Shown one piece after another: positions 9,472 to 64,000 of a stretch of 64,000 nt of DNA. Made by a program: the position numbers and the translations under genes. The first letter of the stretch is position 1. Every line of letters begins with the position of its first letter. The stretch comes from Bugula neritina (taxonomy: Eukaryota; Animalia; Bryozoa). The DNA is taken from assembly GCA_964035545.1 (NCBI GenBank), contig OZ037771.1, positions 1,561,628 to 1,625,627 of the forward strand. The letters run 5' to 3'. The notes beneath the pieces were generated by a model, which was not told the DNA's origin, searched no databases, and saw nothing but the letters and a program-made list of their open reading frames with translations.

Positions 9472-9781
9472 CTTAATATATACCACTTTGATGGCAACAA
9501 GTCGTTTTTATTAGTCCGTGAATGAGTCTTGCACGAGATACAAGCAGCAGAACATTGCCAAATAGAGAAACTTAGTAGAAATGAAATAATCACTGTTGCT
9601 AAAATTCTATTGACCAATCAAATGGTACTTATCGTCGATTGTGATTTTTCGTCCATCGTCATCGTTGTGCACACCCAACGATGACGATTTCGTTTGAATT
9701 CCCTCAAATTTTCTCGTACGAATGTTTTTTCGTGTCAAATAGACGATTTCGTGTCATTCTCACGATCGTGTGGCCAGAGCT
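8930..9781. mobile_element. Non-autonomous PIF/Harbinger-type DNA transposon (MITE), 852 bp
   Basis: Perfect 35-bp terminal inverted repeats AGCTCTGGCCACACGATCGTGAGAATGACACGAAA; TAA target-site duplication at 8927-8929 and 9782-9784; no transposase ORF; internal (TA)n at about 9413-9469. A 3-bp TAA/TTA TSD is characteristic of PIF/Harbinger. Confidence 0.9.
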
Positions 9782-10248
9782 TAAGTCTAGAAAAACTAAT
9801 TAATACAAAAATTGCTCAAAGGAAGGCCACTATTTGTTGAGAGATACAAGTAGGGGGGATATTTCTTCAAGTCAATACAGTACCTCCAAAAGTTAAAAGT
9901 TGTAATTACTGATAGAGCCATAGTTGTGAGCAGGGAGGTGGTTATGGTAATCAACGCACTCCCATCAATGCCAATAAACTTTTTAATGAGTGATATTTTG
10001 ACAGAAGATGTTATCAACTCGTCAAAAAGTTAATGGTATGCGAGACCAAGTGGGCCTGCAGCTTACTTCAGTGATGAACTAAGCAATACACATGATCTAT
10101 AGCGCATTACCTTTTCTAATCATATGAATGAGCACACATCACGAAAACTTGGCAATTAGATGACAGAAATTATATAAACTAAGATATCATTGAACTCTGG
10201 CTGCAGTTCTACAGCCAATAACCTTAACTATCCACTCACTCCACACTA

Positions 10249-16500: not shown

Positions 16501-16989
16501 AGAGCAACTAAAATATCAAACTTCAAGCATATAAGTATTGGTGAATAGCCTGCAACTGTTCCGAATCAATTTCTGGATCAGTAGATGGTCATCGGTTGAG
16601 CCAACTGCACCTACCTCAAATTGAAACTGAATTTACTAAATATAAATATGCCTAATTTGAATTTCAAGCAATCAATACTTAATGAAAAATCAGCCTGTGT
16701 ACATGCATTATACTCACAATTGAAGTAATGCCAACTCTGATGTAACACCACTAAGAGACACAAAGTGAAAGTAAAACTTAGACGAAATCAGTAAAATTAA
16801 ATCTGCAATTCAAATTGATATTGTAAATCAAAATACAAAGCTTTTTTATTTCATGTAAAATTCATTTAACTGTTACAAACCTAGTTTCACTCTGTTTCTA
16901 GTCACAAAGCACTAAGCACTGTGCAGTGTGTAAACTCAAATTGTAATGATCAAGAGAGTGAGAAATAAATCTAATAGTTATCTGATAGC

Positions 16990-17450
16990 AATCATAATGA
17001 TGATGATATTATTATTATTATTATAATATTCTATTAAACTTAATAATAATAGAAATAGAAGTAGATCAAAACTCATAGTCATACTGATACTGATAGTCAT
17101 AGTGTGAGTGTCTGATACGGGTAGTCTTACTCTTAGTCTTAGTCTAATACTAATACAAAAATACTAATACAGTAATAGTAATAGTAATACATACTGATAA
17201 CCAATATCATAGTCAACCTCGAAGTTAATGTTACAGTCATACTGATACTCATAGTCACACTGTCATAGGGCTATGACTGTTAGTCAGTTACTGTTAGTGT
17301 TACACTTACTGACTTAGTCTTACTGTTACACTAACACTTACACTTACAGTTAGTGTTACTGTTACTGTTAGCGTTATGCTAATTACATTTGCAAATTTTT
17401 AATAATTATGATGTAATAAACTTCAACTTACACTCTGCTACCATAGAATA
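16990..17450. repeat. Drifting 6-bp-periodic low-complexity patch A
   Basis: ACTCAT AGTCAT ACTGAT ACTGAT AGTCAT ... CTTACA CTTACA GTTAGT GTTACT GTTACT. Confidence 0.8.
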
Positions 17451-19727
17451 TGAATACCAATGTGCTTCTGCACTAAGCAATACGCTACTAAAATAAGTTG
17501 GTACTCAAGAAATAATTTTAATCATCATCATGCAGTGAGCTAATCTCCTATTCGACAAGCATCAATCATGGGCAATAGAAGTATTTTACTTTTAACCTTA
17601 GACACCAAACAACTTATCAAATAATAAGGGGCGACTGCCGTACGTCGTTCACGCAATTAACCAACCACGAAAGAAGAAAGAAGTAGTGGTGGAACCAGAA
17701 ATTAAAATCGGGGTACCAGAAAATATCTGCATTACTTTATATACTTTACTTTCAAATAATAGAATTTCTAAATACATGTGTTTTATACATAATACAATGC
17801 ATCTTTAACAAATCAACATATACTGCAACTTTGATTTATAAATTTTGAAACTGATGAATATAATACACATCCCACAACTTTATATTAAAGCAATTTGGAA
17901 TTTAAAAAGGTTACCCGTAGATACCAACTAAATTAGATAAATGTTGCCAACAATAAATTACATGCAATATGTTCTGCTAAAACTCTACAAAAGCTAGTTG
18001 TTTTATGTATGCTTGGTGAGCAATTTCAGCATGTCATAGATGTAGCATTTCATCAAAAGCTTCTGTTTTAATAGATGTTTATTAGAATTATATATTAAAA
18101 TATTGATTAACATGATCTTAAATATCTCTTTAAAAAACAGTTCTCTATGGAATAACTCATTCATAGCGTTTATAACCCCCTTCTTTTATGACTACCTACA
18201 TCCCTTTTATCCCTCTAAACAACGTTTAAAAATTTCAGGTCCAGCGAGTCAATTATGTCTGTCAGTGTATCATGATTATTTGCTTGAACACAAATTATTG
18301 AAAAGACAACTCCATAATCAAATAGACGGACACGTTTGCTAGAGATAATTAATGAATGTTCCAACACAGTATAATAACATTTATATTTGGACCAATAAAT
18401 CTTCAGTCATGATTTCAAATTTTATACATAAGGCTCAAGGCTACGTGGACTAGCAATGATGCATCTCACCACCTTTAGTAACTCTGAATAAATAGTCATA
18501 TATGCATACATACATACATATGTAGAAGTTATTATTTCTCACAATGAATTTGTTGCCTTTATAAGTTGAATTATTACATAAATTTGAGCAATAAAATAGA
18601 TAATTAAATTATAGTTCTTGGCTTATAACATCTTTCCAGTTCTTTTAATTGCAGAAACAATTTAAGCTCAAAAATTAGCTTTAAACACCATTAATTACAA
18701 CATATTGCAATAAATAAGAGCTTTTTCCACTTCCATGACTCAACACAACATTATGAACTCCAATAAATGTATTAGTTTAGATAATCTACAAATCCTATAA
18801 TAAAATATGTTATGGCTCAGCGAGTTAAAGGCACTAAATTCACTCTAATATTCTGTAGGACCTTTTAGGTCTATAGCAAGAAACTTTAAAATCAATCACA
18901 AGCCATTGTTTCTTAGATATTTATTGATATTTCAACAGAACATATTTGTTATACTAGTTTAGTTTACAAAAGCATTGTACCAAAAATTAACATGGCCCAG
19001 CCCTTCTGCATGTAGCTAGTACGCTTTATATGTATAGTACAACATTATGATTGTTTAAGCATAGTAACAATCAGTCAAGGCACCTATGAACAAATATAAA
19101 ACTTATAGCAAGTTGTGATTCTACTGTTTTCACGCTCCCACTTTCTCTATTATGCATATTTAATTGATTTTATAATAAGCTATCACGAATTTTCAATTAG
19201 ATAATGCATATTTGTTAAGTCCTGCCATGGCATGTAAATGTTACAAAGAATTGGCTAGTTCAGGAAGGTCACTTTTCTAGCTCACAATATTTTTGTGTAT
19301 AAATAATTATCAATTGAGTGTTTTTATTAATTATAAATAAATCTATGTTATTATGGTAGATGGGAACACAGCCTATATGGTGGCTTTTAGTATTAGCTAT
19401 CATTTACACTTTACTTTAAATAATTGGGCTCAATTTTATTTAATTATTTTGCAATTTGGAAATGGAAGATATTTCAATGTGATGTAATTGATTTCGAAAT
19501 ACATGCTTTGGCGCTGATTGCTATGCCCAAGAATTTAGCTCCAATTACAATCAATTTAAAATATTATATATTACAAAAAGACCATTACTACTTCACTTAA
19601 GCTGGTTTTTGTCATGCTATCCATTTTGATTTGTTCAAGGAAACAAATAATACCAGGTGATACTTTGAGCTCTTCATCAGACAAGTAGATCTTACCCACC
19701 AGGCACTGTAATCATTTAAAATCAAAG

Positions 19728-21162: not shown

Positions 21163-21702
21163 ATGCTACAGTTTCACAGTATTTGCTACAGTTTTACAGT
21201 ATATGCTACACTTTCACAGTATATGCTACAGTTTTACAGTATATGCTACAGTTTCGCAGTATATGCTACAGTTTCACAGTATATGCTACAGTTTTACAGT
21301 ATATGCTACAGTTTCGCAGTATATGCTACAGTTCTACAGTATATGCTACAGTTTTACAGTATGTGCTACAGTTTTACAGTATATGCTACAGTTTCACAGT
21401 ATATGCTACAGTTTCACAGTATATGCTACAGTTTTACAGTATATGCTACAGTTTCACAGTATATGCTACAGTTTTACAGTATATGCTACAGTTTTACAGT
21501 ATATGCTACAGTTTCACAGTATATGCTACATTTTTACAGTATATGCTACAGTTTCACAGTATATGCTACAGTTTCACAGTATATGCTACAGTTTTACAGT
21601 ATATGCTACAGTTTCACAGTATATGCTACAGTTTTACAGTATATGCTACAGTTTTACAGTATATGCTACAGTTTTACAGTATATGCTACAGTTTTACAGT
21701 AC
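21163..21702. repeat. Minisatellite, 20-bp unit ATATGCTACAGTTT(T/C)ACAGT, about 27 copies
   Basis: Direct tandem periodicity; explains three overlapping spurious ORFs. Confidence 0.97.
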
Positions 21703-35174: not shown

Positions 35175-37469
35175 TCACTGGGACTTGGTGGTGGCATTAT
35201 AGACAGCTCCGAGGAGAGTTCCAGCTGCCAAGCCTAAGGCCCCTCCGCCAAGTACGCTGCTACCACGGGCCACGGCCGTGGCCACCCCTACTCCAGACAC
35301 AATGATAGAAGCTCGGTCTACTCTCACCTGACCCCTGTTATGACGGAGTCTGTAGGCGCGGTCAAAGTATTCGTAATCCATGTCCACATCTGGCTTCTGT
35401 AACACACAGAGAATGTTAAACAGTTCAAAGTTGTCTTCTCTTAGCTATGAGAAAAAAACTGGAATGCCATTTAGAGCAGCACATATTATAGAAGAAGTTG
35501 AGTGAAGAAAAGCTCAGCCTGTCTGTAATTTAGAGAGTGCTGAAATTGTTTAGAGGTTGATTAAAAAGTTCTTGTCTGGTAGTCTTTCAAACAGATATGA
35601 CTCCAAGCACCAAGGTATAGCAGAAGTGGCTATCTTATTCTAGAGTTTCTTTAACTTTAGCAAAATATCATGCCATAATTAGAACAAAACTAGAATAGTT
35701 TTAGTTTCACACTAGTAATAAAAATATAATTTCCTGAAACAGAAAATATCTTTAAGAACTAGTACTACGATTTAGGAACAACTGAAGTGGAACCTATAAA
35801 TGTTACTAAATAGTATTTCACATAATACTCAGCAACCCCATACGAAGTATGGCATTTAATAGAGAAGATATTTAATGGCTGACCTTAGAAGTGTTGCGCA
35901 TAGCTCCGTACGTAGCCAGCACTCCCAAGGGAGCTCCTATAAGCATGCCGTTCCTTGAGCCGTTCATGAGAGAGCGGGAGATGGGTCCAGTCTTCCTGAC
36001 GGCTGCGACGCCAGCTCCTATGATGGCTCCTACGATAGAGCCAGCTTGTTCCATCTTCAGCACTACATGGGTATACAACTCTCCCTACACACAAACCAGT
36101 CTCTGTGCAATACAACGTAGTGAAGGAGATCTACTGTACATATATACAGAAATACGTGAAGATAGTTTGCCTTTTTGCATTATAGAAAGCAGCTTACACA
36201 CACAACTAAGCTATAAAAGTTGATTTTAAAATATTGGAGCAAAATGTTGTTTAACAAAAATATTATGTAAGTAGAAATTAAACTTTTCATTATAATTTTT
36301 GCTCCTCCAATAATAAAATATGCTGGAGTTATGTGCACCATACAGTATTATCTTGCATAACCCTATATCTTTAAAGAGAAAACCCCAGGCTAAACATGTC
36401 ATCATAATCTTGATATATGCAAGGAGACGTACATTGAAGCCTAGTGGCTTACAACACCAGTGCTTGAACTGTCCACTGTGACAGGTGGCATTATGATTGA
36501 TAAATATTTCATCCAGGATATCCATGTTGGTAAGACTGTTATGGCCGGGCAATTATGAAAGATGAATCACTTATCATAACAAATTACCATATTTCTAATC
36601 TCTGTGAATTTCAAGTTGCATTATATATATTCTATCATCCGTAAGAGTTAGTGGGGATATTGAAGCAGGTTGTATATTATCTTCAAGTGATAGCAAAGTA
36701 ACATCCGAATGACAAACATACTTGCTCTTTTCAAATCAATTGAAACACAAAGAAATATAAAATATAGTAAGGTAGCTAAATTAAATTATATTGCCAACAT
36801 CGAACGCTTGCTTATAACTTTTGGCAAACAACAAAATACAACCAACAAAATTTCCTGCGACATCTGCAACTAGGTCTCAGCCAGGTGAGGTAAGCTTGCA
36901 GACAGTCTAATTGAATACCACTGCAATATTATCACAAAGTAAACAAGGAGTCTTCAGAAGAGATAAAGCTAATGAAAAGAGACTGTATAATGAAGCTGCT
37001 AGATCTTTATAGTAGAGCCCCAACCTATTCTAAATGTTTGTTTTTATATCAGATACTGAATAAGGTGCAGTACAAACATACTCTAAAAATAGGATGAAGC
37101 ATCAGAAAGATAAACAAAGTAAAAACTAGAAGTAAATTTAGTAGCACTGAGGTCTAACAAAGCCCACTATTTCCTCTCTAATAACACATGGGAAATTCAG
37201 CAATAAAAAACCCTAAAATTAAAGTACTACAGGCTACATGTGGTGAATGAATCCCAAGTTTATCTAAAGCTAAATTTGCTTTCAATCTGAATATCTGCTG
37301 GAGTTTGAAAGGCGATGCTGTAAAGCCTGTGTGATCTTCTAAGAAAGGAAATGAGCAATTGTGTTACCTGTGCGTGCGGAACTGATTTCATGCTTTCATC
37401 ATCAACTTCCATACCCACCACATTTCTTAAGTATGGGTACGACACAACTGGACTCGTCTCTCCTGCCAT
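35175..37469 (-). CDS. Small Gly-rich membrane protein, DUF1757-like, 174 aa, 3 coding exons
   Basis: Exons 37469-37368, 36084-35884 and 35396-35175, all phase 0 with GT-AG introns, total 525 nt. MAGETSPVVSYPYLRNVVGMEVDDESMKSVPHAQ/GELYTHVVLKMEQAGSIVGAIIG.../...DRAYRLRHNRGQVRVDRASII... The DRxYRLRxNxxQVRVDR motif is recalled from DUF1757 (not searched). Putative 5'UTR exon donor at 38469; AATAAA on the minus strand at 35029-35034. Confidence 0.85.
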
Positions 37470-37719
37470 TGTTACGGTTTCTAGAATGAAATAAAATTAT
37501 TATAATTCAAATGTCATCTTATTTTGTGCAATCCAAACAATCCAGTTAATCAGGTTTATACTTATTGCAGGTGAAATTAATAATATTAATAGCAATATCA
37601 ACACTAAGTTTGAATAAAAATGCAACGATGTAGATACTTTTGTAGGACGACATATCATGAGATAAGAGATTAAAATATAGCCACTCAAACATATGGGGTT
37701 TAGCATTATAATAATTATG

Positions 37720-38390
37720 GTAATTATTTGCATTACTACTATCAAGCATTATTGTGACAAGTTACAAGTAATACTAATAGTATTTGATGAAACATTATTC
37801 GTAATGATAAAAATGATCATACTCATAGACCATAGCATATCAGTAACCTAAGTTAACTGTTAAAGTACCGCGCAACATAAGTAAAGCTAAAGGTTAGCAG
37901 AACTAACAAAAGTAAAAAAAATTAAAATTAAGTGCACCACGTTCAACTACTACTAGCAATATCTCACTTTTTTGTATGATACTAATTACGGTAATAGTAA
38001 TACTAATAGCGTTAGCGTTACAGACCATCAATTCATCAGTCAAAGACTCAAAATAAATGTAATTATTTACACTTACACTTACTCTTAGTCTTACAGTTAT
38101 TATCATAGTGATAGTTGCATAATTAATATTATTATGCTGGTATTTCAATTTTGTTACCTGTACTTGTAGTTCACCAGATTTATATGTATGTCGTTGTATT
38201 TATATTATTGAAACAACCACAATTTAGAAGTTTAAGTTAAACTTAATCTAAATATTAAAGTTAATCTGTTTTTATTTTAATTTTTCGTGACGCTCACACT
38301 CAGTCTCACAGTCACACTGACACTGACCTGAGTCTGACTCGCTCATTATTTATTATTATAAGTTAAAGCTATTTGACATGCATGCAAATT
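37720..38390. repeat. Drifting 6-bp-periodic patch B (inferred first intron of the DUF1757-like gene)
   Basis: GTAATA GTAATA CTAATA GCGTTA GCGTTA; CTTACA CTTACT CTTAGT CTTACA; CTCACA CTCAGT CTCACA GTCACA CTGACA. Confidence 0.75.
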
Positions 38391-38469
38391 GCTATTTACA
38401 TGCTTGTTAATAAAATAACAACTACATCAAAAAATTGACTTAATTCATTTTTATTCTAACAGCACTTAC

Positions 38470-38972
38470 CAGATAAAAATTAAAATAGCCGTGATCTTTG
38501 ATAATAAATGGACGTTGAACCTTAGCTGCAAGATAGTAATGTAAACACAGTTAAAAAGCTTAAAAGATAAATCGCTACAATAGTTTACGGTTTGAAGTAT
38601 CCGCGTTGCTCTCCAAAGTTGACCGCAATAAGTATTATTATAATATTCTAGGTAACATAAAAAGCAATAGAATAGCTTTACTGCTAATAAATGTTTTGTG
38701 AAACGTGAATAGTTAATTTGTGCAAAATTAACCAATAATAGCAACGCTAACTAAAATCGCAAAGTTAGCGGTTCCCCTTGCACAAAGTCACAATAATAAC
38801 ATCGCATGTGAAAAGTTACATAACTGTAGACTGAACGTGAATGGCATTTTAATTTTAACTAGCCGTAAGTGGACATAAAAATTATTTATGAATAATTGCA
38901 TAGGTGGTTAGGAATAAACCATAAGACTTTAAAAGAGTAAAATATCTACTATCCAATCACAATGGCAATTCC
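38470..38972. promoter_or_regulatory. Probable bidirectional promoter between the DUF1757-like gene and POLH
   Basis: Divergent donors TCTG|gtaagt (minus, 38469) and CC|gtaagt / CC|gtaagc (plus, 38865 and 38973); locally more CpG; CCAAT at about 38953. Confidence 0.55.
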
Positions 38973-38984
38973 GTAAGCGTTAGT

Positions 38985-39780
38985 AACATTAAATTTTGAT
39001 TTTCACTTAATCTTCATCTTAATCTTATACTTGTACTTGTAGTTATAAGTTAATGTTATTACATTTACTTATAGTTATACTTATAGTTATAAGTTATTAG
39101 TATAAACTTATACTTATAGTTATTAGTATTACTATAACTATTAGTTATTACTATTAGTATTACTAATACTAATATTAATAGTGATTACTTAGTCATAAGT
39201 TGATGTTATAGTAATAGTTATTATGTAACACTAACAGTAACAGTAATTACTAGTTAATAATTATAAATTAGTATACTGCTACTCATAGTCATAGTGATAT
39301 ACTTATACTTATAGTGATAGTCATATTTATACTCATACTGATGCTGATGATACTCATAGTGATAGTGATACTGATCGTCATTGTCAATCATATTCATACT
39401 GATACTCTGTTACCCATAGGGCATAGTGATAGTGCCTGTGATAGTGTCATACTCAGACTGATACTGTATAGATAATTATTACATAGCAGTAAGCGTAGCT
39501 TTAACTTGAACTTTGAGTTCGAGCAGCGTAATTTAATTTTATATAACAGACTAAAACTAAGCTTTAGGCTTAAGCCATGCCCATTAAATTTAATCATTAT
39601 GATTGTGATTGTTATTATCATTGTGATGGCCTTTAGCATAACTTATATACACCTTTATTTTCTTTTGAAGTTCAAATTCAATTCGAAATAAAGAATTAAA
39701 ATGGCAATTGCATTGAGTGAATCATTGACAGTTACACAATCTCAATCACTCTGAGTATGAGAAACATGATTATCAATACG
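38985..39780. repeat. Drifting 6-bp-periodic patch C (inferred first intron of POLH)
   Basis: CTTAAT CTTCAT CTTAAT CTTATA CTTGTA CTTGTA GTTATA; ACTCAT AGTCAT AGTGAT; ACTGAT GCTGAT. Confidence 0.8.
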
Positions 39781-40082
39781 AATGTTATAATCACTTTTTA
39801 TCGATATAAATATGAATAATAATAATTAATACCATATATTGTATAATCAAGGATATCATAAATTTTTACAATGCAGTTTTTTATTGACATTCTTTAAAAT
39901 TAAAGTAAGTGACAGTATGACTTCCGTTTTCTAAAATATGATTTTCATTACAAATGGCTACAGATAAATCTTTGTAATTTGAATTTGGCATATTTAATAA
40001 AAATGTCTCAATTTTCGACCTGTTTAAACTGTTTTAGAGCTCAATTATTGAATTTTATACCAAGTTTAAAAACTCAGACAAA

Positions 40083-43000
40083 ATGATGGATGGAGGTAAC
40101 TTATATTTCAACTCTAACGTCTCCAACAAAGAATCTCATCGAAAGTTGAAAAGGTGATCAGAAATTGTTAACCTACAATATAGTTATAAATTAATAACCT
40201 GTATTACTAACTATAAATAACTTGCCTGTGAAATACTAGTAGTTGTACATTAGGCTAATTTTAGTTGGTTGTTGCATCATACTATACTCAAATTACATAA
40301 CTCTAAAAAGAATCTCAGTGATAAAAGTTATATAATACAATAATACAATATAGTTTGCACTTGTTTGTTGTTATAAAATTAGGTGAGAGAATATTTACAA
40401 ATATCCACGGCCTAAAACTTGCAGCTATTCATTTGTATGCTCAATGTTGTTTAAATTAATTGGCTTTTAGTGACATTCAAAGCCGAATAGTAGCACTGAT
40501 TGACATGGATTGTTTCTATGTTCAAGTGGAGCAGAGATTGGCTCCAGAATGGAAAGGAAAGCCATGTGTTGTAGTACAGTATAATGAGTGGAAAGGTTTG
40601 TCTAGCCTGTGGTGTGGAAATTGTGAGACTAGAATCGTATTTAAAGCATCAGTTTTTGTCACATTTTATTGTGTTGGTGTGAAACCGTGACTTTATCAGT
40701 CTGACATGAAGTAATATTATAGGTTGAAGTAGTAACTCTGCACTATGGAACTATTCATGTTACTGGTTTGAGTTCTACTTTAATAAAACTGTGTTTAAAA
40801 TTCTATAAAATATTTTGTACTTATCTTTAATTTTTTTCTTGCTGGTGTGAAACCAGATGCTACTTGGATGCTTTTCCCAAAGTTGTATTACAAATAACGA
40901 CAGTATAATACAAGCTCTATGCAAATGTATGATAGATCTCATTGGCTGTTACTGTTAGGAGGGGGAATCATAGCTGTCGGGTATGAAGCTAGGGCTAAGG
41001 GAGTCACTCGCAGAGGTATGAGGGGAGACGATGCCAAACAAGTCTGTCCAGATGTGAAGCTGTTCAGTGTGCCAGAAATCAGAGGTGAGGAAATATTTGC
41101 TGCTTCACTAAAGAAGCTGCCAATTCTTTCCGCATGCTTCAAGGCAGTACGTTTACACTCTACATTACATTACTGTAACTGTGTACTACTTGAGATGTTT
41201 AGGGAATTGATTTTAGTTATCTGCCAGCATTGCAGCATTTGTGTGTGCAACTTAGTTGTAGTTCTATTGTTTCTAGTGATGTCAGAAGGGGTAAATTAAC
41301 TATAGTGTGTAGTTCATAGCCTGAGGGTTTTGTTACAGACCACTAAACTATTAGAACAGTGCATTATAGGAATGCCCAGAAAATAGCAATTTTACTTGTA
41401 TATATTAGAAAAGCATTTATATCCATATGATTATATTTACTTCTATATATTTCCTTTATGTCTTTAAATGATTATTTTTACTTTTACATATTTGAATAAA
41501 TATAATATTTACTTTAACATCTTTACATGAATATATTTACTTTAACATGTTTATGTGAATATATTTACCTTTATACATTTATATGTATATTTTATTTACG
41601 TGTACATATTTGTATGTATATACTTCATACGCAGGTACATATATTTGCATGTATATAATTCATACGCAGGTAAAGCAGATCTAACAAGATACAGAGAAGC
41701 TGGGGCGGAGGTAATATCTGTTCTCACACAGTTCACGGGATGTAGAGTGGAGAGAGCGAGCATAGACGAAGCGTATATAGACCTCACTGATAAAGTACAG
41801 GATATGATTTCACAGGTTTCAATGTCACAGCTAGCGATACCCTCCACTCAGGACTTACCTCATACGTTCGTAGTCGGCTCTGAAAACGGTATGAGTTGTA
41901 CAAGATGTCTAACATATACACAAGTAACATTATATTGTAATAATAACAAATGGAATAAAACATTTCTTTGTTTTATTGATAGAATATTTAATAATAGTTT
42001 TTTCAATAGTTTTATTACTGAGATTATTGTTAGTGACCCAGGTTTGTTTTGCGGTAGGTTTTACGAATCACACTATAGATTTATAATAAGTGCAGCTCCT
42101 ATTTATTCTCTGACTGTATCTAAAACCTGGATGCATTCTGATCACGTTTTTAGCATTTGTTGTAAATATGTATACTCTGAGACGCTAAAAGAATAAAACT
42201 TGGACTCGAGGCAATCTATTTAAGGACTTTAGAGCATATCACATGACCAGAATGTCGTATTGATATAAACCAGCTGTTTGACAGAGGTTTGGAGTGGCTC
42301 CTTTCTACTTGTATAGACTGTGGCTTCTTAAACTCTCACAGCTTTTGATCCTACACTTTCCTATGCTTTAGACAACCGTGAAGATTCGCTCAGAGAGTGG
42401 CTCGAGTCATTGAGCTCTCCAGACTCTCTGGATTCTCACAATGATCTCCGATTGTGTTTTGGCGCCGTCATTGTGGAGAAGATGAGAAAGGCAGTTAAGG
42501 ATCAGACAGGGTTTGAGTGCTCAGCAGGCATTTCACATAACAAGGTAGAATACAGTTTCACATAACAAGGTAGAATATAGTTTCACATAACAAGGTAGAA
42601 TACAGTTTCACATAACAAGGTAGAATATAGTTTCACATAACAAGGTAGAATATAGTTTCACATAACAAGGTAGAATATAGTTTCACATAACAAGGTAGAA
42701 TATAGCTTCACATAACAAGGTAGAATATAGTTTCACATAACAAGGTAGAATATAGTTTCACATAACAAGGTAGAATATAGTTTCACATAACAAGGTAGAA
42801 TATAGTTTCGCATAACAAGGTAGAATATAGCTTCACATAACAAGGTAGAATATAGCTTCACATAACAAGGTAGAATATAGTTTCACATAACAAGGTAGAA
42901 TATAGTTTCACATAACAAGGTAGAATATAGTTTCACATAACAAGGTAGAATATAGTTTCACATAACAAGGTAGAATACAGTTTCACATAACAAGGTAGAA

Positions 43001-46000
43001 TATAGTTTCACATAACAAGGTAGAATACAGTTTCACATAACAAGGTAGAATACAGTTTCACATAACAAGGTAGAATATAGTTTCACATAACAAGGTAGAA
43101 TATAGTTTCACATAACAAGGTAGAATATAGTTTCACATAACAAGGTAGAATATAGCTTCACATAACAAGGTAGAATATAGTTTCACATAACAAGGTAGAA
43201 TATAGTTTCACATAACAAGGTAGAATATAGTTTCACATAACAAGGTAGAATATAGTTTCACATAACAAGGTAGAATATAGCTTCACATAACAAGGTAGAA
43301 TATAGCTTCACATAACAAGGTAGAATATAGTTTCACATAACAAGGTAGAATATAGTTTCACATAACAAGGTAGAATATAGTTTCACATAACAAGGTAGAA
43401 TATAGTTTCGCATAACAAGGTAGAATATAGCTTCACATAACAAGGTAGAATATAGCTTCACATAACAAGGTAGAATATAGTTTCACATAACAAGGTAGAA
43501 TATAGTTTCACATAACAAGGTAGAATATAGTTTCACATAACAAGGTAGAATATAGTTTCACATAACAAGGTAGAATATAGCTTCACATAACAAGGTAGAA
43601 TATAGCTTCACATAACAAGGTAGAATATAGTTTCACATAACAAGGTAGAATATAGCTTCACATAACAAGGTAGAATACAGTTTCACATAACAAGGTAAAA
43701 TATAGTTTCACATAACAAGGTAGAATATAGTTTCACATAACAAGGTAGAATATTGTAGACGGTTTCATCCTCTAAGCCCTCTAATGATATAAACTGTAGT
43801 TATAGCAAGTTTCATACAGCAATTCATGTGTTGCCCAGGTTCTTTCAAAGCTAGCCTGTGGACTACATAAACCACAAAAGCAGACCATTCTGGGCATCAG
43901 TGCAGTGCCCGACTTATTTTCCACTTTCCCAATAAGCAAGGTCAGACATTTTGGCGGAAAGCTGGGGCAGAGTATAAAAGAAGACTTTGGTGTGAACTTT
44001 ATAGGAGAGTGTGTGACAATTCCTCTCAAGGTGAACTCTTTGATGCAGAAGTTCGTAAACAATATTATATAGGCTGTTGGATACCCCCACCCGATAGCTA
44101 ATTGTTAATCAGAACTCTAAGGCTTGTACAGCCAGTTACAGTCAGACTGTTTCTATTCAGTGATCTCTTTAAATCTGAATTATTCAACTTCTTAATTTTA
44201 TTTTCATTTTATTGAACCTCACTTCTTGTGGTACTTCCATTACTTTTTCTCCTAAGATTTATTATTAAGATTTCCCCCTCCCGAGATGATTATTTAAAAA
44301 TGATGTCAGGTTCTATCATTGTCAACATTATTATCCACTATTCAGGATTTGAGGGACCAATATGGTACAAAGACGGCTAACTTTATACACGACATGTGCA
44401 GAGGTCATGACCCCGAGCCTGTCAATGACCGACAACTCCCAAAGTCAGTTGGCTGCAGTAAGAATTTTAGAGGAAAGCTTATAATAACCACATACAAGAA
44501 GGTACTCACTGTTAACTGTTGACTATTTACTGTTCACTACTTACTATTACCTATTCACTATTAACTACTCATTATTTACCAGTAATTATTTACCAGTTAA
44601 ATATTCACAAAATGTTTATTGCTGTTCCTGTGTATTGCTAAACCAACTTATGTACCTTAGCTTTCAATGTAAGTAATTTATTATGTGAGTTTGCTTTGTA
44701 ACCAGGCCCGCTATTGGCTGAAACAGTTGTCTGCAGAAGTAGAAGAGAGGCTGATTAAAGATCGGGAGCAGAATCATAGAATACCTAAAAGTCTCTCCAT
44801 GTCAGTGAGGTTTGTGTATAGATTTGTGTATAGACTTGCGTAAAGATTTGTATAGACTTATGTATAGACTTGTGTATAGACTTGTGTATAGACTTGTACA
44901 CGATTTGTCTATATACTTATGTATAGACTTATGTATAGACTTGTGTATAGACTTGTGTATAGACTTGTGTATAGACTTGTGTATAGACTTGTACACGATT
45001 TGTCTATATACTTATGTATAGACTTGTGTATAGACTTGTACACAAGTTGCTGAACTATCCAGTCTCTTATGACTGTGAATAAAGTAGACTGAATTGTTCA
45101 CCTGAAGAGGGAGGTAACATACAGAATATCTCTACAGGCGTGGAAAATGTTTAAATACACAAAAATAAAGAATCTAGATTTTCTGTACTGAAAATATATT
45201 TTTATAGAATTTTATAGCAAAATATTTTGTAAATAAATACTGTGTTGTAGGTTCACAGACTATCAGTGGCTGTCCAGGGCCCTCCCCCTCTCTAAGATGA
45301 CGCAGCAGGCAATAGAGAACTCAGCTATGACTACTCTCACTAAGATCTGTGGTGAAGAGACTACAGTACTCAATCCTGCCATCACCTGTTTGAGTACGTC
45401 TGCTTATTCTCTCTGCTTACCTTCTGCTTTCTCTGTTTTCATATCTGCTATGTTCTTTCTGGTATTAATTGTCATCAACGCTTGGCAAGTTTCTAAAAGT
45501 TGTCACATCATGTTTTAGAAACTTCATTTTTGTCGAATGCTGTTTAATTTTACTATCATATTATTTGTGTATAACAGCAGTTGCAGGTGTTTGTGCCTAG
45601 AGAAAGTAATCTCACATGTTGTTATGGTCATATGTATTTACTCAAATCAATTGCAGTTTGCCATGCTGCTTGTTGCACTATTATAGGTCTAAGTGCTGGG
45701 AAGTTTGAGGAGCTCGAGGGCAAGTCCCTTACAAACTACTTCTCTACCGGAGCTAAGTCTACAGTTGACATATTTGACAGCATAGCCCCTCCGTCCCCCG
45801 AACCCCAGGTGATTCCCGGACCGCCGCTACCGCCGAGTAATGGCTGCAGTTTGAAGGCTTTCTTCAATGACTCACACAAGGTCCTTGACCCTTTCAACTC
45901 CCTAGCTAACTCCTTCACTTCTCCGTCCAAACCCGAACCGGCCAAACCAAAAGGCATTGCTAAATATTTTAAACAAACTGCGCTGAATAAAGTATCTCCC

Positions 46001-48687: not shown

Positions 48688-51487
48688 ATGGTTTCTACAC
48701 CCAGCAGAGAGATGACCGGGGCGTTAGTCCTGGGTGCCGGAGTGCTACTAGTAGCTGGTTATGTTCTTTATAAGCGGAAATCAAAATCCTATTCGGTTGG
48801 GAAACTTTCACAGCTCATCCTCTATCCGATCAAATCAGGGCCACCCATGCATGTCCAATCAGCAGAATGCTTAGAAACTGGACTTAAATATAAACAAGTT
48901 TATGATAGGTCAGTATATGTTGTTGTCATGGCAATATGTGTATACACAAAAATTATTTGCATCGCAATTTCAACGACTTGAAACTTGTTTATTAGTGCAC
49001 TGTCTTGTGGTTGAGGTCAAGGTCGATACGCTTGTAATGCGATATTTTCATTTCCTCTGCAGACAGTTTGCTCTGATAGGAAAGACAACTTTCATCAGCA
49101 TAAGAAAAAACCTACGACTTCTAAAGTTAAAAATAAATTATGACGAAGACACGAATAGCTTGATTCTAAAAGCTCCTACGATGACTGCTGCATTGTCTAT
49201 ACCTCTGCAGGTTCCAGAATATGACCCCAGTAAGGTCAAATCCTTCATGTAAGTGAGACTATCGTAAGTTATGCTTCATTACTATGTTTCTAATGGTAGC
49301 ATAGATTGCTGTATCAGTTGGAATATTTATTGGGTGCATAATTCTATAACATATCATAATAAATGAATTTACACATGAAAGGGGAAGCAACTCATGAATT
49401 TAACTTTTTCACAAAAAAATAACTATTTCTGCTTATCGATATTATAAACAATCTTAAAACAAAACTAAACCATATCACAGAAATAGAAATGTGTGAATTT
49501 TATTGACAGGTGGTTCGATAATCGAGAGACCCTCTACTTTGATTACGGAGATACGTACTCCAAGTGGCTCAGTGAATTCCTTGAAGAAGAATGCAGAATG
49601 GGGTATGCACACCCTGAGATTGTAAGGGAGATAAATCCTGAGATGGTGTACAATCATACAGACGTACACCCAGACAGCAAGGTAATAGGCTCACAGGCTA
49701 CACATCATGAACTTCCTGCTGACTAGCCTTAGCTCTAGAGTTGTATAGCCGCAATGTGTAAATCATACTAGTGTATTAACAAAGAGTGCTTTATAAGCTG
49801 TCAGTGAACAGGCTGTTGTTCTACACATTTTAGTACAAGTTTTAAAGGTAATGGAAAATACCCTTATGATAAACATTGCAAATTCTTAAAGTGTACCAAG
49901 TGGCTTATATTTGAATAAATGTGTTTTAGAGATGAGGTTTTGAATGTGAAATTTTGTCACAGAAGATGATCAACACTGGCTTATCTAATTTTTTTTTGCC
50001 AAAGTTCTAAATTTTTCTGAAGATGCAAGTGGCTGTGGCATGTTTTTTTATATGACTACCGAGCCTATTACCATCAGGCTAAAAGAGTTTATGTCTAAAA
50101 TGATTCAACATTTAGCTATTTCTTTGTAGTGAATCCATTTCACTTTGACATTATTTACAGATTTTGTTCTCAAACACTCACCCATTTATGATTGCCACAC
50201 AAGCGTCTTTAGATGATTTGAATGAAAGGCTAGAAGACAAGGTCACTATGGATTCATTTCGACCCAACTTTGTAATAACAGGAGAAGGCAACTCCGTCAT
50301 TGAACCGTACATCGAGGTCTGTAGTCTGTTGAACAGAATTATGTATTGCAGTGTTAGTATTTAGCAGAATAATTTAGATTTTGTGAATTTGAGTTTGATA
50401 GAACAAGGGGAAACACAACTTCTTAAACATGAATTGCCAATATTTTTTTATTTTGAATGTATTGCAGTGAAATAAAAGTGATGTTAAAAGTTTATTAATC
50501 TTTTAGAAAGTTCATAACTCTAACTATATAAAACCAAAAGCTTTATAAGGCTATTTATAGCTTTATAAAGCTATAAATAGCTTTATAAAGTTATAAATAG
50601 CTTATGTCAAGTGTCTTGGAACAGCCAGTCTATAGTTCCATAGTTTAGTTTAAACTCAAATATTACACAGGAAGAATATTTTCTAAAGCCTACTCATCGT
50701 TAAGCTTATTAAAAAGCTCAAGATTTTAAATATTTTCTGAGCAGTTTACATCAGCTAATATTGTCAACGGCTAATAGAACACAAGTACAAACATATATCA
50801 TTGACAAATAGTGCATGCATTCTGTAGGATTCTTGGCGTGAGATTTGCGTAGGACCAGATGCTGTTCTGTACAACTCGCGGGCGTGTCCAAGATGTCCCA
50901 TGATTTATGTTGACTACAATAACCACAAGATGAGAGATAACAAGGAACCAATGACAACTCTTCTCAGGTAAGTTACAGCTGAGCAACCAATGGCAATGCT
51001 CGATAAAAGCAGTCAAACTCTCTAACTAGTAACATGAAATTATTGAGCATTAACGACAATTGAAATATCTTTTATATCAGTGATGTAAACAAACCTCATA
51101 ATTTAATGTGCAATTTATAATCTTATCAGCCAGTAACAGATTTTCTAAATGAGTAAATCCACAATATACATAAAACTAATAAGCAAACCATGCCTTATAA
51201 TAACCCTAATAGTGTTGAAATAGTTCTACTAGTACTAATAGTACCAATAATCCTAATAGTCTTAGAGTAGTACTTCTAGTACTGCTAGTACTAATAGTCA
51301 TGATAGTCTAGTTAGTACTACTAGTACCAATAGTCCTAAAAGCTATTAGCATATTACTCTTAGATATCGCAGAGGGACTGTGAAGAAGGACAAAAGCAAG
51401 ACTGTATTTGGAATCAATGTTACTCTGATTAAACATGGCCGAATTTCTGTCGGAGATAAATTCGTAGCTGCTTATGCTACAGCATAG
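48688..51487 (+). CDS. MTARC: Mitochondrial amidoxime-reducing component (mARC/MOSC family) paralog A, 332 aa, 6 exons
   Basis: Exons 48688-48908, 49063-49248, 49510-49681, 50161-50316, 50828-50967, 51364-51487; total 999 nt. N-terminal TM anchor followed by basic residues, LYPIKSG, DRQF, ASLDDLNERL, FRPNFVI, EDSW, Moco-ligating ACPRC, KEPMTTLLRYR, FGINV, GRISVGD. Confidence 0.93.
50541..50590. repeat. 50-bp near-perfect palindrome in mARC-A intron 4
   Basis: CTTTATAAGG-CTATTTATAGCTTTATAAAGCTATAAATAG-CTTTATAAAG: 32-bp perfect core and one G.T mismatch over 50 bp. Confidence 0.9.
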
Positions 51488-56416: not shown

Positions 56417-59400
56417 CTAGGTGACGGCCATGATACATTTCTTCATAACGGGTAGAAGTAGTTTGAAAGCATCTCTGACGTAGCTGCTGCTGTTGCTGGC
56501 CTCCAGGAAGATGTTAGTAATCATCGGGTTGATAGAGTCCGGGTCTTCGGAGTCGTCTGCTGCTGTGTTGAGGCAATCGTTGTACAGACGTGACTGGATG
56601 GAGATCTCATTGGTGACTAGTCTCAATATACTGCAAATAAATGTTAGACATCAAGTTATCTTCTCAAATATTGCTCAGTATAACTCTTTGATACTGTGAG
56701 GACAGATATGAACGTTGAAGCAATGTTATACACGCATATAAATATATCTATTAAATTGATTGGTATTCTTGCCAGCTTTCTGTTACACTAGTCTTACATA
56801 TAATAAAAAAGAAACATTAAAGAGATGTGATTGGTTGAATCACAGTTTATTGTGATCAAATATTATGGAGGTAAAAACTCTGAAGAAGCTATTCAAAGGT
56901 ATTTATTTGTTCTGCTGGCATGTCTTGGCATACCATAACTCCTGGTGAGAGATGATGAGAGATAACGAGGGAATTGCAGGATTACAAGAGAGATTTGGTG
57001 TATATACTATATAGAGCACGAACCTGATGAAAGAATCGCTAACAGCATCAATGTCTATGCCTGACTCTTGTGCTGAAGGTAATAAAAGAAGTTCACCAGA
57101 TTTATGGCAAAGTTCTATTGTAGCTGAAGAGATCTCAGCAAATGAATTCAAAGCCTCATTGTGAATATCATGACCTTCAATCTGCAATGTGACGCAGTAT
57201 TACTACAATAATATATACAGTATATCTTATAATGTAACACAGTAATACTACAATAATATATACAGTATATCTTATAATGTAACACAGTAATACTACAATA
57301 ATATATACAGTATATCTTATAACGTAAAGCAGTAGTACTACAATAATATATACAGTATATCTTATAATGTAACACAGTAATACTACAATAATATATACAG
57401 TATATCTTATAATGTGACGCAGTATTACTACAATAATATATACAATATATCTTATGACGTAACGCAGTAATACTACAATAATATATACAGTATATCTTAT
57501 GACGTAACGCAGTAATACTACAATAATATATACAGTATATCTTATAATGTAACGCAGTATTACTACAATAATATATACAGTATATCTTATAACGTAACAC
57601 AGTAATACTACAATAATATATACAGTATATCTTATAACGTAAAGCAGTATTACTACAACAATATATACAGTATATCTTATAATGTTATATTATGATCATA
57701 TATTACATCTATATGCTTTTGGAGACCACAAAAATTGGAAGCTTTTTTTACAGATTCTGCAAAATCCCAAGGCTGCCATTGAGTTTGAATACAAGAGTAA
57801 TCCCCAATTTGTGGGAACATTTGGATACATCTACTAGTCAGTCTACCAATATTATCCTAAAACCTGAGACTAGAAATGAGCGCCAGCTCCATGCGACAGC
57901 AAAGCACAGATATAGTCTGTGTTCACTGAACCTAAGGCTACACTAGGTTACGGGTGGCTCAACTCACCCGCTCTCCTGCGTCTTGCCGTTGTTGACAATC
58001 TGTCAACCAATTTCGAGCTTTCTGTTGCGCCTCCGTCAGCCTTGCATGCTTTACTGGCAGCGAAAGTTTTTGAGTGAAATTTTCTATTCCGGCTGGGAAA
58101 TCATGTTCCTCTTCACATTCTGTTACACACATATACGAGATATAGTCTAGTTGTGTTTATGGATATGATACTTTAACATATAGTTATAAAGAGATCAAGT
58201 TAAAGAAAAACATTCTTATACCAAAAAGAAGCAGGCAGAGTCTAGCGGGTCGAGGTATGACAGACACTGTTAGACTGAAGGTCCTCTGTAGGCCATTGAT
58301 GATGTCATAATTACTCTTGAGCTACTCTGAAAGTTCTCAAGCTATGATGGCAAACAGTTTGAGGTGCAACAGGGCGTCCCCTACCTTTTCAATCAAATCG
58401 CAACTATCAACAAACATTTCTTTAGATTTGCCAAGAACCTCTACTGGCAGCAAAGAATTGAAATCCTGATGACCCTAAATCGATTGACAGCATCTCCTCT
58501 ACTAAAGTTACTTGCCACATCACATACCTTCATCTGAGTCGTATATCTGTGAGAATTTTTCAGCCAAAGAGTCGAATGTAGTTTGAAGGTCGTCTCCGGG
58601 GTCACCTTCAAGGTCGTCTGAGTGAGTGAGAGAGTTGACGCAGGTCACTGAGAGAAGCTCCAGAGCCTCTAAACTAGCCAGACCTGAGAAGCAACACACA
58701 GGAAGTACAAAAGAGTGTCTACCGATCAGATGCATAGTTTAGTCCTAATAACCTCACAGCAGCGTACTTTTTATTCTGAATACAACTTTAACTAAAACAT
58801 AATAGGAGTTGCATTCTCAGTCTGAGTCAAGACGTAGATTGCTGGCATAAAATCTCCTCTTAAGAAATAAAGAGTGAGGAGTGAAAATTTCTATTAATAA
58901 TAGTCAATGTTATTTTAATTTTGAAACAGTGAAATTATTTGAACATAATATTATATCATTACTTATGAGTGTGATGGAGAAGTACAAATTTTACCTTCAT
59001 TATTTTTTGTTCAACTACAATTTAATAGAAGAAAAGACAAATCCCAACGAACTTGAACAAAGTTTAATAAAACATGTTGCTTGATTAAGCAACGTTTAAA
59101 CCACGCACGCACGCAGAGCATACCGTGATGTTGGTCAAACAGTGTACTATAAACAACTAGTGGCTGTGCATTGCTCTCTTCAGCTGTTCGCCTTTCACTC
59201 TCTGCTTTAGCTTCTCTTAGCATCTGTGGAGATCAATGAAGATAGTGAGTTTACATCAGAGCTGAATAAATCAGTCATTGCTAATTGATTAAAGCATTTT
59301 GATAGAAATTAACTGCATAAAATTGGGCTATTAAACTATAGCCTTAGTTCTTATAATAAACAATACAGACCTGAGAGAGGTTGGTCTTTTGCCCTTTCAG

Positions 59401-62099: not shown

Positions 62100-62650
62100 A
62101 TGACTTAGTCACAGACTCATGAGCATATTTATTAATATAAAATAACATATTTTATAATAGTTTAAATTATACTACAGATCAATAATATTAGTAGTAGTAG
62201 TACCATGAATATAAGATTTAGACAAAACTATAATAAATAATTATAATAGCCAAAGAAATCACATCAAATAAATAATATACAAAATGAAAATTTACAATCA
62301 CAATGATCATGATGATGATGACCTGAACTTGAAGCTGATTATGGTGATGATCATGATGATGATAATATTGATTTAATAATTATTACACTCATAATCACAA
62401 TGATAGTGACCATGACTATCAGTATCACCATACAATTTTAATATTACTATGCCTATGGTCTATGAGTATGACTATGACTAGTCACTGAGACCGAGTATGA
62501 CTATGAGTCTATGACTATGACAGTACATGACTATGACTTTGACTATGACTTGAGTATCAGTATGACTGAGTATGAGTATCAGTATGAGTGAATCAGAATG
62601 TTACAGTTTGAGTTAAACTTAATGTTTATGTTAACATTAAGTTTAACTCA
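62100..62650. repeat. Drifting 6-bp-periodic patch D (inferred first intron of FAM114A)
   Basis: ATGAGT ATGACT ATGACT; ATGACT ATGACT TTGACT ATGACT TGAGT ATCAGT ATGACT; runs up to the GAG|gtgagt donor at 62651. Confidence 0.8.
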
Positions 62651-62651
62651 C

Positions 62652-63010
62652 CTCGTAAAAACGAAAATAATATGATAATGTAGGATGATAAAAATTTAAA
62701 ATAAATTAATCTATCATACTTTAAGTTTATAAATATAATATAAATTGTAAATATAAGGTAAATTATAATTACCAGTGTTCACTAGGTTGACTTTCAGTTT
62801 CAGGTAGTTAGATTTTCATACTTGTGCTTTTGTTATGATCCTCCACGTCAAGAGTTCAAATCGTATAGTATAGTCGAGTTTAACTAGCATAAGTCGATCT
62901 TTGACGGCCACTCGTTTGAACACCAGGATTTTAGGCTGCAAAACTCTTGCATTGAAGATAACAACCTTTCCCTGTTTACAAATATACGCATGTGCGCTTT
63001 AATAGCGGAA
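62652..63010. promoter_or_regulatory. Probable bidirectional promoter between FAM114A and the next plus-strand gene
   Basis: CpG-richer core with an NRF1-like ACGCATGTGCGC (about 62986-62997), ETS-like GCGGAAAT, YY1-like AAATGGC, CACGTCA (CRE half-site) and a B-box-like GAGTTCAAATC (about 62852). Confidence 0.55.
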
Positions 63011-63031
63011 ATGGCCTCGAATTACCAAGCG
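63011..63031 (+). CDS. Probable first coding micro-exon (MASNYQA) of an unidentified gene continuing beyond the window
   Basis: GAAATGG start context in the CpG core, followed by GCG|gtatgt donor. Confidence 0.45.
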
Positions 63032-63129
63032 GTATGTTTTTTCCATTCTCAATCTGATGTTGTAAATGATTTTTTCATATAGCCATTACTTTTGTGGAAC
63101 TTTGTACAAAAGGACCTTTTGATTTTCAA

Positions 63130-63725
63130 TAAATCATATTGTTATGACGTTTATGAATTATGAACAAAAATTGTTATATTCACTTTCATTTTGATTTTCG
63201 AGTTAAACTTTACACTTCAAGTTGAAGTTCCATTTTCATTTTGATTTTGACTTGCATTTACTGACTTAGTCTTACAGTTGAGTTACTCGTAAGCTTAGAG
63301 TTAGTCCTACTCTTGCAGTAAGACTCTTAGTCAAAGACCAACAGTAAGTCTTACACTTACAGACTGTAGCACTAATTGTAATACTTAGTCTTGCTGTATT
63401 TTAATGCTTTAAGTTAAACTTAAACTAAAGTTAATTTTTTGTTGAACTAAGCCTAAGGTGAGGGCTAAGACTAAGAGTAAAAATAAAATTGAATGTTTTG
63501 TAAGTCAAATGTATACAAATTTAGTTTTTAACACTAATGCTAATGGTAATACTAATAGTAATACAAATGCTAATACCAATAATAAATCACTAAATGTAAT
63601 ACCATGTTTTTAATTTAATATTATTAATTATTAAATTTAATGTGAACTTGAATCACACTCAGTCTGACAAGTAACAGTTTATTTAGTTTTAACTAAAGCT
63701 AAATGAGTCAATGATTTTATATTAA
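63130..63725. repeat. Drifting 6-bp-periodic patch E (inferred first intron of the plus-strand gene)
   Basis: TTCAAG TTGAAG TTCCAT TTTCAT TTTGAT TTTGAC; CTAATG CTAATG GTAATA CTAATA GTAATA CAAATG CTAATA CCAATA. Confidence 0.78.
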
Positions 63726-64000
63726 TATTTTACAAGGTTTATTATTTATTTTTCAATTTAGCTTACTGTGGTCAGGATCCATATAAACATTTGTATTAAT
63801 CATTGTATACATTTAACTTTCAGCTTCAAACGTTATACAATGGCATTTTTATTGGAAAAAATACAAAAAAATGCTGCATTGTTTAATTTGTCACATTTGC
63901 TTTGTTCTGCATTTCAATACTGGTAAAAATTTGGAGCAAGTTACTTAATTTATTGATTTGATATTTTAAAGCTGTTGAAGCAGAATCTTCTGTATGCAAT

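Follow-up and report, generated by a model that had tools for sequence, protein, structure and literature searches.

The DNA between 37.9 and 39.8 kb of the stretch analysed here (64,000 nucleotides of the Bugula neritina genome, hereafter the window, on contig 7 of the 216-Mb assembly) is best read as one instance of a genome-wide class of sequence, the "ACT/AGT-anchored hexamer lattice", which lies on the transcribed side or sides of non-periodic cores that are not depleted of CpG. Judged from their composition, these cores appear to be unmethylated in the germline, and the core at ~38.43-38.90 kb probably serves two genes, POLH and a gene of the DUF1757 family, a hexamer patch beginning the first intron of each. 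With a confidence somewhat short of even, we regard the tracts as a DNA lattice that is specific to the lineage, blind to strand, located where first introns begin and functional as a chromatin element.

Results

Six-nucleotide periodicity at the locus and elsewhere in the window

An earlier note on this DNA had placed two patches of 6-nt self-match at 37720-38390 and 38985-39780, on both sides of a non-periodic core of about 500 bp, and had described a hexamer unit that changes step by step. The shuffle check clearly showed that the patches are real: the lag-6 self-match over 37481-40037 was 0.434, vs 0.300 ± 0.008 (maximum 0.322) in 200 dinucleotide-preserving shuffles (z = 17), and for the pooled patches the lag-6 periodicity had z = 41. 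Using sliding 120-nt windows and a lag-6 match threshold of 0.45, we obtained patch limits close to those of the note, with a non-periodic core of ~480-570 bp, varying with the detector; the stepwise change of the unit is likewise seen in the sequence. In both patches, lags 5 and 7 remained at background (0.24-0.29). The features detected, none of which is assigned to a strand, are as follows.

37876..38427: left hexamer-lattice patch, lag-6 match 0.48 vs 0.27-0.28 at lags 5 and 7
38428..38904: non-periodic core, putative bidirectional promoter with both first exons, from CpG content and AT skew
38905..39846: right hexamer-lattice patch, lag-6 match 0.53
62171..62848: left patch of the second promoter of the window, lag-6 match 0.51, adjoining CpG-undepleted bins 62750-63249 (CpG observed/expected ratio, o/e, 0.95-0.99)
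63110..63729: right patch of the second promoter of the window, lag-6 match 0.48
16714..17472: one-sided patch, lag-6 match 0.50 (0.60 over 16993-17417)

The second pair reproduces the layout that had been claimed for 62.1-63.7 kb. Equally, no lag-6 patch was found on scanning the mARC region (48.7-55.8 kb), where the sole signal is a 9-mer array at 51164-51350, in agreement with the statement that the mARC starts carry nothing comparable. The one-sided patch sits left of a CpG-undepleted bin (17500-17749, o/e 0.97) and shows an outward T>A skew on the patch side, consistent with a minus-strand gene.

Within the patches, Tandem Repeats Finder (TRF) detected no more than short fragments with a period of 6, 12 or 18 and 67-87% matches. 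When lags 1-30 were compared, "drifting" windows were in excess at lag 6 and its multiples alone, lags 12 and 18 being harmonics of lag 6. There were 3303 drifting window starts at lag 6 in the window and 11445 in 200 kb of contig 1, vs 75-1039 (mostly ~200-900) and 736-6525 (mostly 2000-3700), respectively, at lags that are not multiples of 6.

The patches lie beside CpG-undepleted cores, on their transcribed sides

The core at 38428-38904 has two features of a bidirectional CpG-island-like promoter. It is free of CpG depletion (o/e 1.36 and 1.09 in 38500-38999 vs 0.42 for the whole window), and two genes diverge from it, with minus-strand DUF1757 exons to the left and the plus-strand exon of the POLH polymerase domain to the right; the AT skew flips sign at the core. 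On contig 1, genes for an MFS transporter and a methyltransferase each lie on the minus strand, left of the respective core. Pooling of 26 cores gave a CpG o/e of 0.93 at a GC content equal to the genome average.

The linkage of the patches to promoters, proposed in the earlier note, was clearly upheld: 13 of the 15 patches found without bias are at most 400 bp from a CpG-undepleted segment, while random placement gives 6.0 ± 1.9, and none of 2000 random placements reached 13. Moreover, a CpG-undepleted core stands beside the patch at 15 of 17 loci chosen solely by the ATASTS motif (S, C or G). An outward T>A skew, of the type expected for a sense strand, was observed on 29 of 34 patch sides (p = 4e-5) vs 11 of 18 patch-free sides. 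By this skew, the tracts occupy transcribed sides, ~0.3-1.2 kb from the core, and most promoters have a patch on one side only. Plotted against distance from the core centre, the lag-6 match rises at ~250-300 bp, keeps a plateau of 0.52 to ~700 bp and returns to baseline by ~1.3 kb. Outward-facing GTRAGT donors are present at the inner patch edges of several loci, too few for a test.

The core itself is single-copy in the genome. It had no match in Rfam at E<=0.1 when a non-coding RNA gene was sought, and a phage collection gave no match either. A search for a motif shared among the pooled cores revealed only CpG-containing hexamers. The core at 38428-38904 holds two copies of AACGTGAAT(A/G)G, at 38700-38715 and 38832-38846, as well as an inverted repeat (GCTAACT...AGTTAGC) at about 38745-38775; all are candidate binding sites for factors and show no enrichment across cores.

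Grammar of the hexamer units

The unit consists of A-[C/G]-T (A-S-T) plus an AT-rich triplet, and A-S-T is present in all major unit classes, which in the local sample include AATAST (28%), ATASTS (17%), AAAAST (9%) and others. At lag 6, the probability of S following S is 0.56 vs ~20-30% at other lags. The position of S is thus periodic, whereas its identity has no memory and tends to alternate between units: where both positions are S, the letter is the same in 0.53 of cases at lag 6 and in ~0.5 at all lags. The A/T letters (W) behave otherwise: where both positions are W, the letter is the same at lag 6 in 0.72 of cases, falling to 0.50 by lag 36, so that chance level is reached over ~30 nt. 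They are copied locally from unit to unit with a memory of ~2-4 units, and blocks of 12, 18 and 24 nt are amplified as well. For instance, a run of 16 AATAST units contains one change at an A/T position and a scrambled C/G string, and in ~70% of the (TAWTAS)x5 runs the W position is homogeneous, the mixed runs changing in blocks. Among the 4786 runs of (TAATAS)x5, 31 are all-C, 61 all-G and 241 strictly alternating, where 150 of each would be expected if C and G were independent.

The choice between C and G depends on the flanking bases. Given identical flanks at lag 6, ACT is followed by C in 0.39 and by G in 0.50 of cases, and TCA by C in 0.42 and by G in 0.38; by contrast, ACA is followed by G in only 0.03 (T 0.37) and TCT in 0.07. 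As ACT and TCA swap freely and ACA and TCT hardly at all, the swap to the complementary base is confined to complementary flanks. The same rule holds more weakly at A/T centres (0.19-0.26 vs 0.03-0.13 elsewhere). The frequency of the C/G swap is independent of the length of the palindrome arms. There is no strand bias (961 ACT vs 923 AGT on the sense strand), and of the ATASTS loci, 6 have the motif in the sense of the gene and 9 in antisense. Compared with AT-matched DNA, the patches have 1.34x as many TpA steps, a 2.7-3.4x depletion of A/T runs of at least 5, and no CpG.

The window is also unusually rich in homogeneous minisatellites with units of 15-45 bp (e.g., 646-1047, 21163-21701, 42531-43753 and 57186-57685), and these served as a control. 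The contrast with them, already pointed out in the note, extends to the mismatch spectrum: minisatellite units differ mainly by transitions, with C>G making up 8 of ~190 differences, whereas C/G swaps reach 38-50% at the ACT and TCA triplets of the patches. Since the same-window minisatellites lack a C>G excess, the C/G rule belongs to the lattice and not to the general mutation spectrum.

Abundance in the genome and support from raw reads

With the same detector, about ten more patches, several of them paired, were found in the 200 kb of contig 1, and such tracts make up ~4-5% of the sampled DNA. Across the genome, four consecutive ATASTS units occur 3162 times and five consecutive TAATAS units 4786 times, vs 138 for a mirror-image control. 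Stretches of this kind beside promoters number in the thousands in this genome.

Long pure arrays of (TAATAG)n or (TAATAC)n are rare (C5:2201455-2201634, C4:20456505-20456576 and C7:9019725-9019778). At C1:754652-754741 and C1:1903132-1903215, the arrays alternate in blocks between TAATAS and TATTAS; as these are reverse complements, inverted segments adjoin within one tract. On contig 1, at ~1,154,563-1,155,438 (L017:4563-5438), there is a minisatellite of the 24-mer TACTAACAGTTATACTAATAGTTA, repeated 36.5 times with 90% identity. The 24-mer comprises four A-S-T hexamers in which ACT and AGT alternate, without CpG, and lies ~750 bp from a CpG-undepleted segment; the array may represent a young stage of a hexamer patch.

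Raw reads reproduced the sequence for parts of both patches. Contigs of run X1 are identical to the assembly at 39349-39583 and 39554-39774 (0 differences) in the right patch, and over 37871-38423 in the left patch they show few differences, all of them transitions. For ~39000-39340, no own-locus X1 contig of any length was shown, and over 39005-39500 thousands of paralogous contigs pile up. The motif depth is several hundred-fold above normal in four runs of two studies, and mixed ACT/AGT arrays are present in three further runs from two studies besides X1. One could suppose that mis-mapped polishing reads scrambled solely the variable positions of near-identical arrays, the C/G pattern being an artefact of assembly or polishing. 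The identity of the X1 contigs with the assembly over 39349-39774 and the mixed arrays in the further runs make this explanation scarcely credible.

Lineage specificity

At ~20 POLH loci of other eukaryotes, taken from metagenomes, no lag-6 patch was present upstream of the same exon, and the comparison indicates that the lattice is specific to this lineage. An orthologous patch was sought in a near relative: a search with the neighbouring open reading frame (ORF) of 281 aa gave nothing, a search with the C-terminal exon of POLH returned only two Joint Genome Institute (JGI) fragments (P0001 and P0002; 87% identity) that lie far from the promoter, and a metagenome scan for the orthologous promoter yielded POLH loci of more distant eukaryotes only. 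Run X2 (a "symbiont metagenome", 2016) contains a relative that is ~92-94% identical in unique DNA, retains the 38428-38904 core at ~92-96% identity and shares the motif excess. This relative and the JGI fragments together indicate that a sister lineage is present in public data.

Gene structure around the shared promoter

The gene features on either side of the core are the following.

37260..37480, minus strand: exon 2 of the DUF1757-family gene, its first coding exon (ATG 37469-37467); the acceptor ...ttcattctag|, a polypyrimidine tract plus AG, ends at 37481
37481..38469, minus strand: putative intron 1 of the DUF1757-family gene, with donor CTG|GTAAGT at 38469-38464 and acceptor AG at 37482-37481
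38962..38978, plus strand: candidate end of the first coding exon of POLH, ATG GCA ATT CC|GTAAGC, from a scan of frame and phase
40471..40595, plus strand: POLH exon with the beginning of the IMS domain (Y-family polymerase; profile positions 1-30 of Pfam PF00817, E=2.4e-07)

In the DUF1757-family gene, a strong acceptor lies 11 nt ahead of the ATG at 37469; the ORF at 37260..37480 has no Pfam match of its own, and the DUF1757 matches in Pfam fall on the downstream exons 35872-36078 and 35175-35405. In POLH, the acceptor ttttag| at 40470 is preceded by an in-frame stop at 40457-40459, and the ATG must therefore lie in an upstream exon. Spliced to 40471, the exon at 38962-38978 reads in frame MAIPDIQSRIVALIDMD. 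This reading, with the MAIP exon placed in the core, gives the usual length of the POLH N-terminus and fits the homologues better than the rival first coding exon at 40083-40153, which also fits, adding a 23-residue extension after an acceptor at 40037. The intron end at 40037 given in the note thus belongs to one of two possible 5' structures. A second strong donor, CC|GTAAGT, is found at 38865, and the right patch begins ~10-30 nt past the donor at 38973. For both genes, the logic of the splice sites agrees with the earlier placement of the patches inside first introns, which we likewise infer from the sequence.

Discussion

In this work, we describe tracts that keep A-S-T every 6 bp and leave the choice of C or G nearly free. 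We propose that a strand-blind process acting at the DNA level would both make and keep the lattice. This process would be limited to the chromatin immediately downstream of the start site, i.e., the unmethylated zone of the first few nucleosomes, where the lattice would grow through local duplication of one to four hexamers, and a constraint would hold A-S-T at each sixth base pair, the duplex triplet ACT/AGT being the same object in either orientation. As a guess at function, DNA that is rich in TpA, poor in A-tracts and free of CpG might organise the first nucleosomes or insulate them, at the transition from the unmethylated promoter to the methylated gene body.

Several points weigh against a functional chromatin element. 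We deduced start sites, introns and the "unmethylated" state from sequence, and the sample comprises 264 kb (the window and the 200 kb of contig 1) plus the 17 loci selected by motif. Not every candidate promoter carries the lattice, because the CpG-undepleted segments 5994-6188 and 9542-9813 (o/e 1.4-1.5) have no hexamer patch. The second of these is merely adjoined by an (AT)n run. The units drift and the tracts hold indels, and ~4-5% of the sampled DNA is much to keep under selection. Furthermore, selection alone cannot account for random C/G beside near-perfect A/T letters; a process that redraws or flips the middle base is required, and this is the main unexplained fact whether the lattice is functional or not. 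We know of no protein that would read a 6-bp period and of no mechanical property that has one.

The strongest competitor is a neutral mutational footprint, in which repair or duplication in open, unmethylated promoter-proximal chromatin redraws the centre of pseudo-palindromic triplets without any function; the repair of promoter-targeted breaks and error-prone gap filling are candidate processes. We consider such a footprint a real possibility and lean nevertheless to the functional chromatin element. The short memory, the drifting units, the indels and the young array of the 24-mer (x36, 90% identity) by a core have the look of turnover, and the tracts are lineage-specific. In human germline data, C-to-G changes are tied to break repair. 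The strand symmetry suits a process targeted to chromatin rather than coupled to transcription: transcription-coupled mutagenesis is normally strand-asymmetric and the tracts are symmetric, so that the footprint of germline transcription suggested in the note does not fit. Its other suggestion, a footprint of promoter-directed double-strand breaks, fares no better as far as symmetry is concerned, since a process symmetric about the nucleosome-free region predicts patches on two sides and most promoters have one. The own-locus differences between X1 and the assembly in the left patch, few and all transitions, also speak against the footprint, as does the under-representation of pure arrays, which is contrary to slippage. 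To our knowledge, no process flips C and G between complementary flanks (ACT, TCA) only, sparing ACA and TCT. Inversion of whole triplets was rejected, as the reverse complement at lag 6 is depleted for non-palindromic triplets (0.014 vs 0.030), and so was a genome-wide C-to-G mutation bias, which is absent from the other minisatellites. On the other hand, a mutational origin has a reported precedent in the periodic An/Tn clusters (PATCs) of C. elegans, said to arise by mutational bias (bioRxiv 10.64898/2026.08.08.743475).

The remaining explanations are far weaker. Ordinary hexanucleotide microsatellites decaying in AT-rich introns ("cryptic simplicity"), with no link to promoters, would explain the short arrays of period 6, 12 and 18 found by TRF and the A/T letters, whose similarity between neighbours decays as in slippage. 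Slippage predicts like neighbouring units and frequent pure arrays. The C/G position shows the opposite, with neighbours no more alike than 0.53 at lag 6 and all-C and all-G runs well below expectation, pure arrays being depleted genome-wide; the "6-nt slippage" of the earlier note is therefore insufficient by itself. Neither does the spectrum of substitutions between units resemble the usual one seen in the same-window minisatellites, lag 6 alone is affected, and the closeness to CpG-undepleted cores is far beyond chance. Taken together, these data largely refute decaying microsatellites, which we consider very unlikely. Remnants of transposable elements or dispersed satellites inserting near promoters, such as Helitron-borne arrays, are improbable, if a shade less so. 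In their favour, minisatellites abound in the genome, a Helitron minisatellite origin has been reported for PATCs, and thousands of contigs match the patch at >=90%; however, these matches are short (~50-60 nt), and shared A/T letters with random C/G would alone give ~92% identity. All-against-all BLAST revealed no sequence common to the cores and outer flanks of 16 patches, the core is single-copy, and the orientation relative to the gene is random. As for a first-intron signal at the RNA level (splicing control, protection from premature polyadenylation or RNA structure), the tracts start right after the putative exon-1 donors and only on transcribed sides, and some units resemble branch points (CTRAY) or donors (GTRAGT). 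Such a role is nonetheless hardly to be expected, because the tracts lack strand bias and do not avoid polyadenylation hexamers (AWTAAA, 57 vs 52 ± 7 in shuffles). The folding potential is also inconsistent, with z = -2.1 for AWT-AST arrays and +3.7 for ATASTS arrays, and a hairpin or cruciform was dropped as the general cause.

Among known systems, the nearest analogue, already named in the note, is provided by the PATCs, abundant AT-rich periodic intronic DNA that is reported to shield germline genes from silencing (PMC4947018; bioRxiv 10.64898/2026.08.08.743475) and to arise when repeats in transcribed DNA are remodelled, deriving from Helitron minisatellites via a transcription-coupled bias (bioRxiv 10.64898/2026.08.08.743475). 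Like PATCs, the lattice is abundant, periodic, AT-rich and non-coding, is found in the introns of some genes only, lacks a fixed consensus and is bound to a lineage. PATCs, however, have a 10-bp helical period that encodes curvature, with clustered A-tracts spread through introns, whereas the lattice has a 6-bp period, depleted A-tracts and a position within ~1 kb of the promoter core. In the spectrum of WW dinucleotides, the patches peak at 6 bp (3.0 vs 0.35 in controls), and their power at 10-11 bp (0.21-0.41) does not exceed that of controls (0.37-0.42). As helical periodicity is absent, the tracts are not PATCs in the physical sense. The orientation-blind ACT/AGT rule has no counterpart in PATCs either, and the role guessed for the lattice would be comparable to that of PATCs on a different physical basis.

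Promoter-proximal short tandem repeats (STRs) of human, birds and Atlantic cod are reported to be enriched near start sites and tied to expression and methylation (PMC4857002, PMC4725869, PMC5241972). The lattice resembles them as tandem repeats near promoters. STRs, though, are homogeneous, of 1-6 bp and of many motifs, whereas the lattice has one grammar at thousands of promoters; unlike in STRs, its pure runs are under-represented, and it is 0.5-0.9 kb long and one-sided with transcription. A likeness in texture is offered by cryptically simple sequence, which Tautz, Trick and Dover reportedly defined in 1986 as scrambled, drifting short motifs more repetitive than chance. The lattice shares the drifting motifs without a clean tandem array, but cryptic simplicity is put down to slippage and has no fixed period or positional rule, whereas the lattice has a strict period of 6, is fixed to promoters and, in its C/G letters, contradicts slippage. 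Somatic hypermutation of immunoglobulin genes begins 100-200 bp past the start site, fades by 1-2 kb, requires the transcribed side, acts on both strands and may yield chiefly changes from C to G and from G to C. The likeness to that zone is one of position only, and we do not propose hypermutation as a mechanism: it is somatic, depends on an enzyme with a known hotspot and has no periodicity, and the flank rule of the lattice misfits a deaminase hotspot. Full-text literature searches turned up no description of a promoter-flanking signature with a 6-bp period and an ACT/AGT anchor, which supports the suggestion of the note that the signature is undescribed.

More tentatively still, the lattice may point to an undescribed strand-blind rule that acts in the first kilobase downstream of active promoters, by which ACT/AGT and TCA/TGA (less so AAT/ATT) are kept every 6 bp, with their orientation redrawn at random or alternating. 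It would represent either a new chromatin element, based on a dyad-symmetric factor or on nearest-neighbour DNA mechanics, or else a type of promoter-proximal repair, also new, in which single base pairs are inverted.

If functional, the lattice would be the second case, after PATCs, of chromatin behaviour residing in bulk non-coding DNA and not in protein-binding motifs, with a period and a physical logic that differ from those of PATCs. If it is a mutational footprint, it would point to a repair process tied to promoter chromatin, and we know of no mechanism that matches the flip of a base to its complement solely between complementary flanks. The near-deterministic grammar makes the question accessible to standard assays. 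By extrapolation from the sample, a large share of the promoters of this bryozoan, perhaps a third to a half, carry the lattice, and either way the tracts allow the position and direction of promoters in this genome to be marked cheaply and without annotation.

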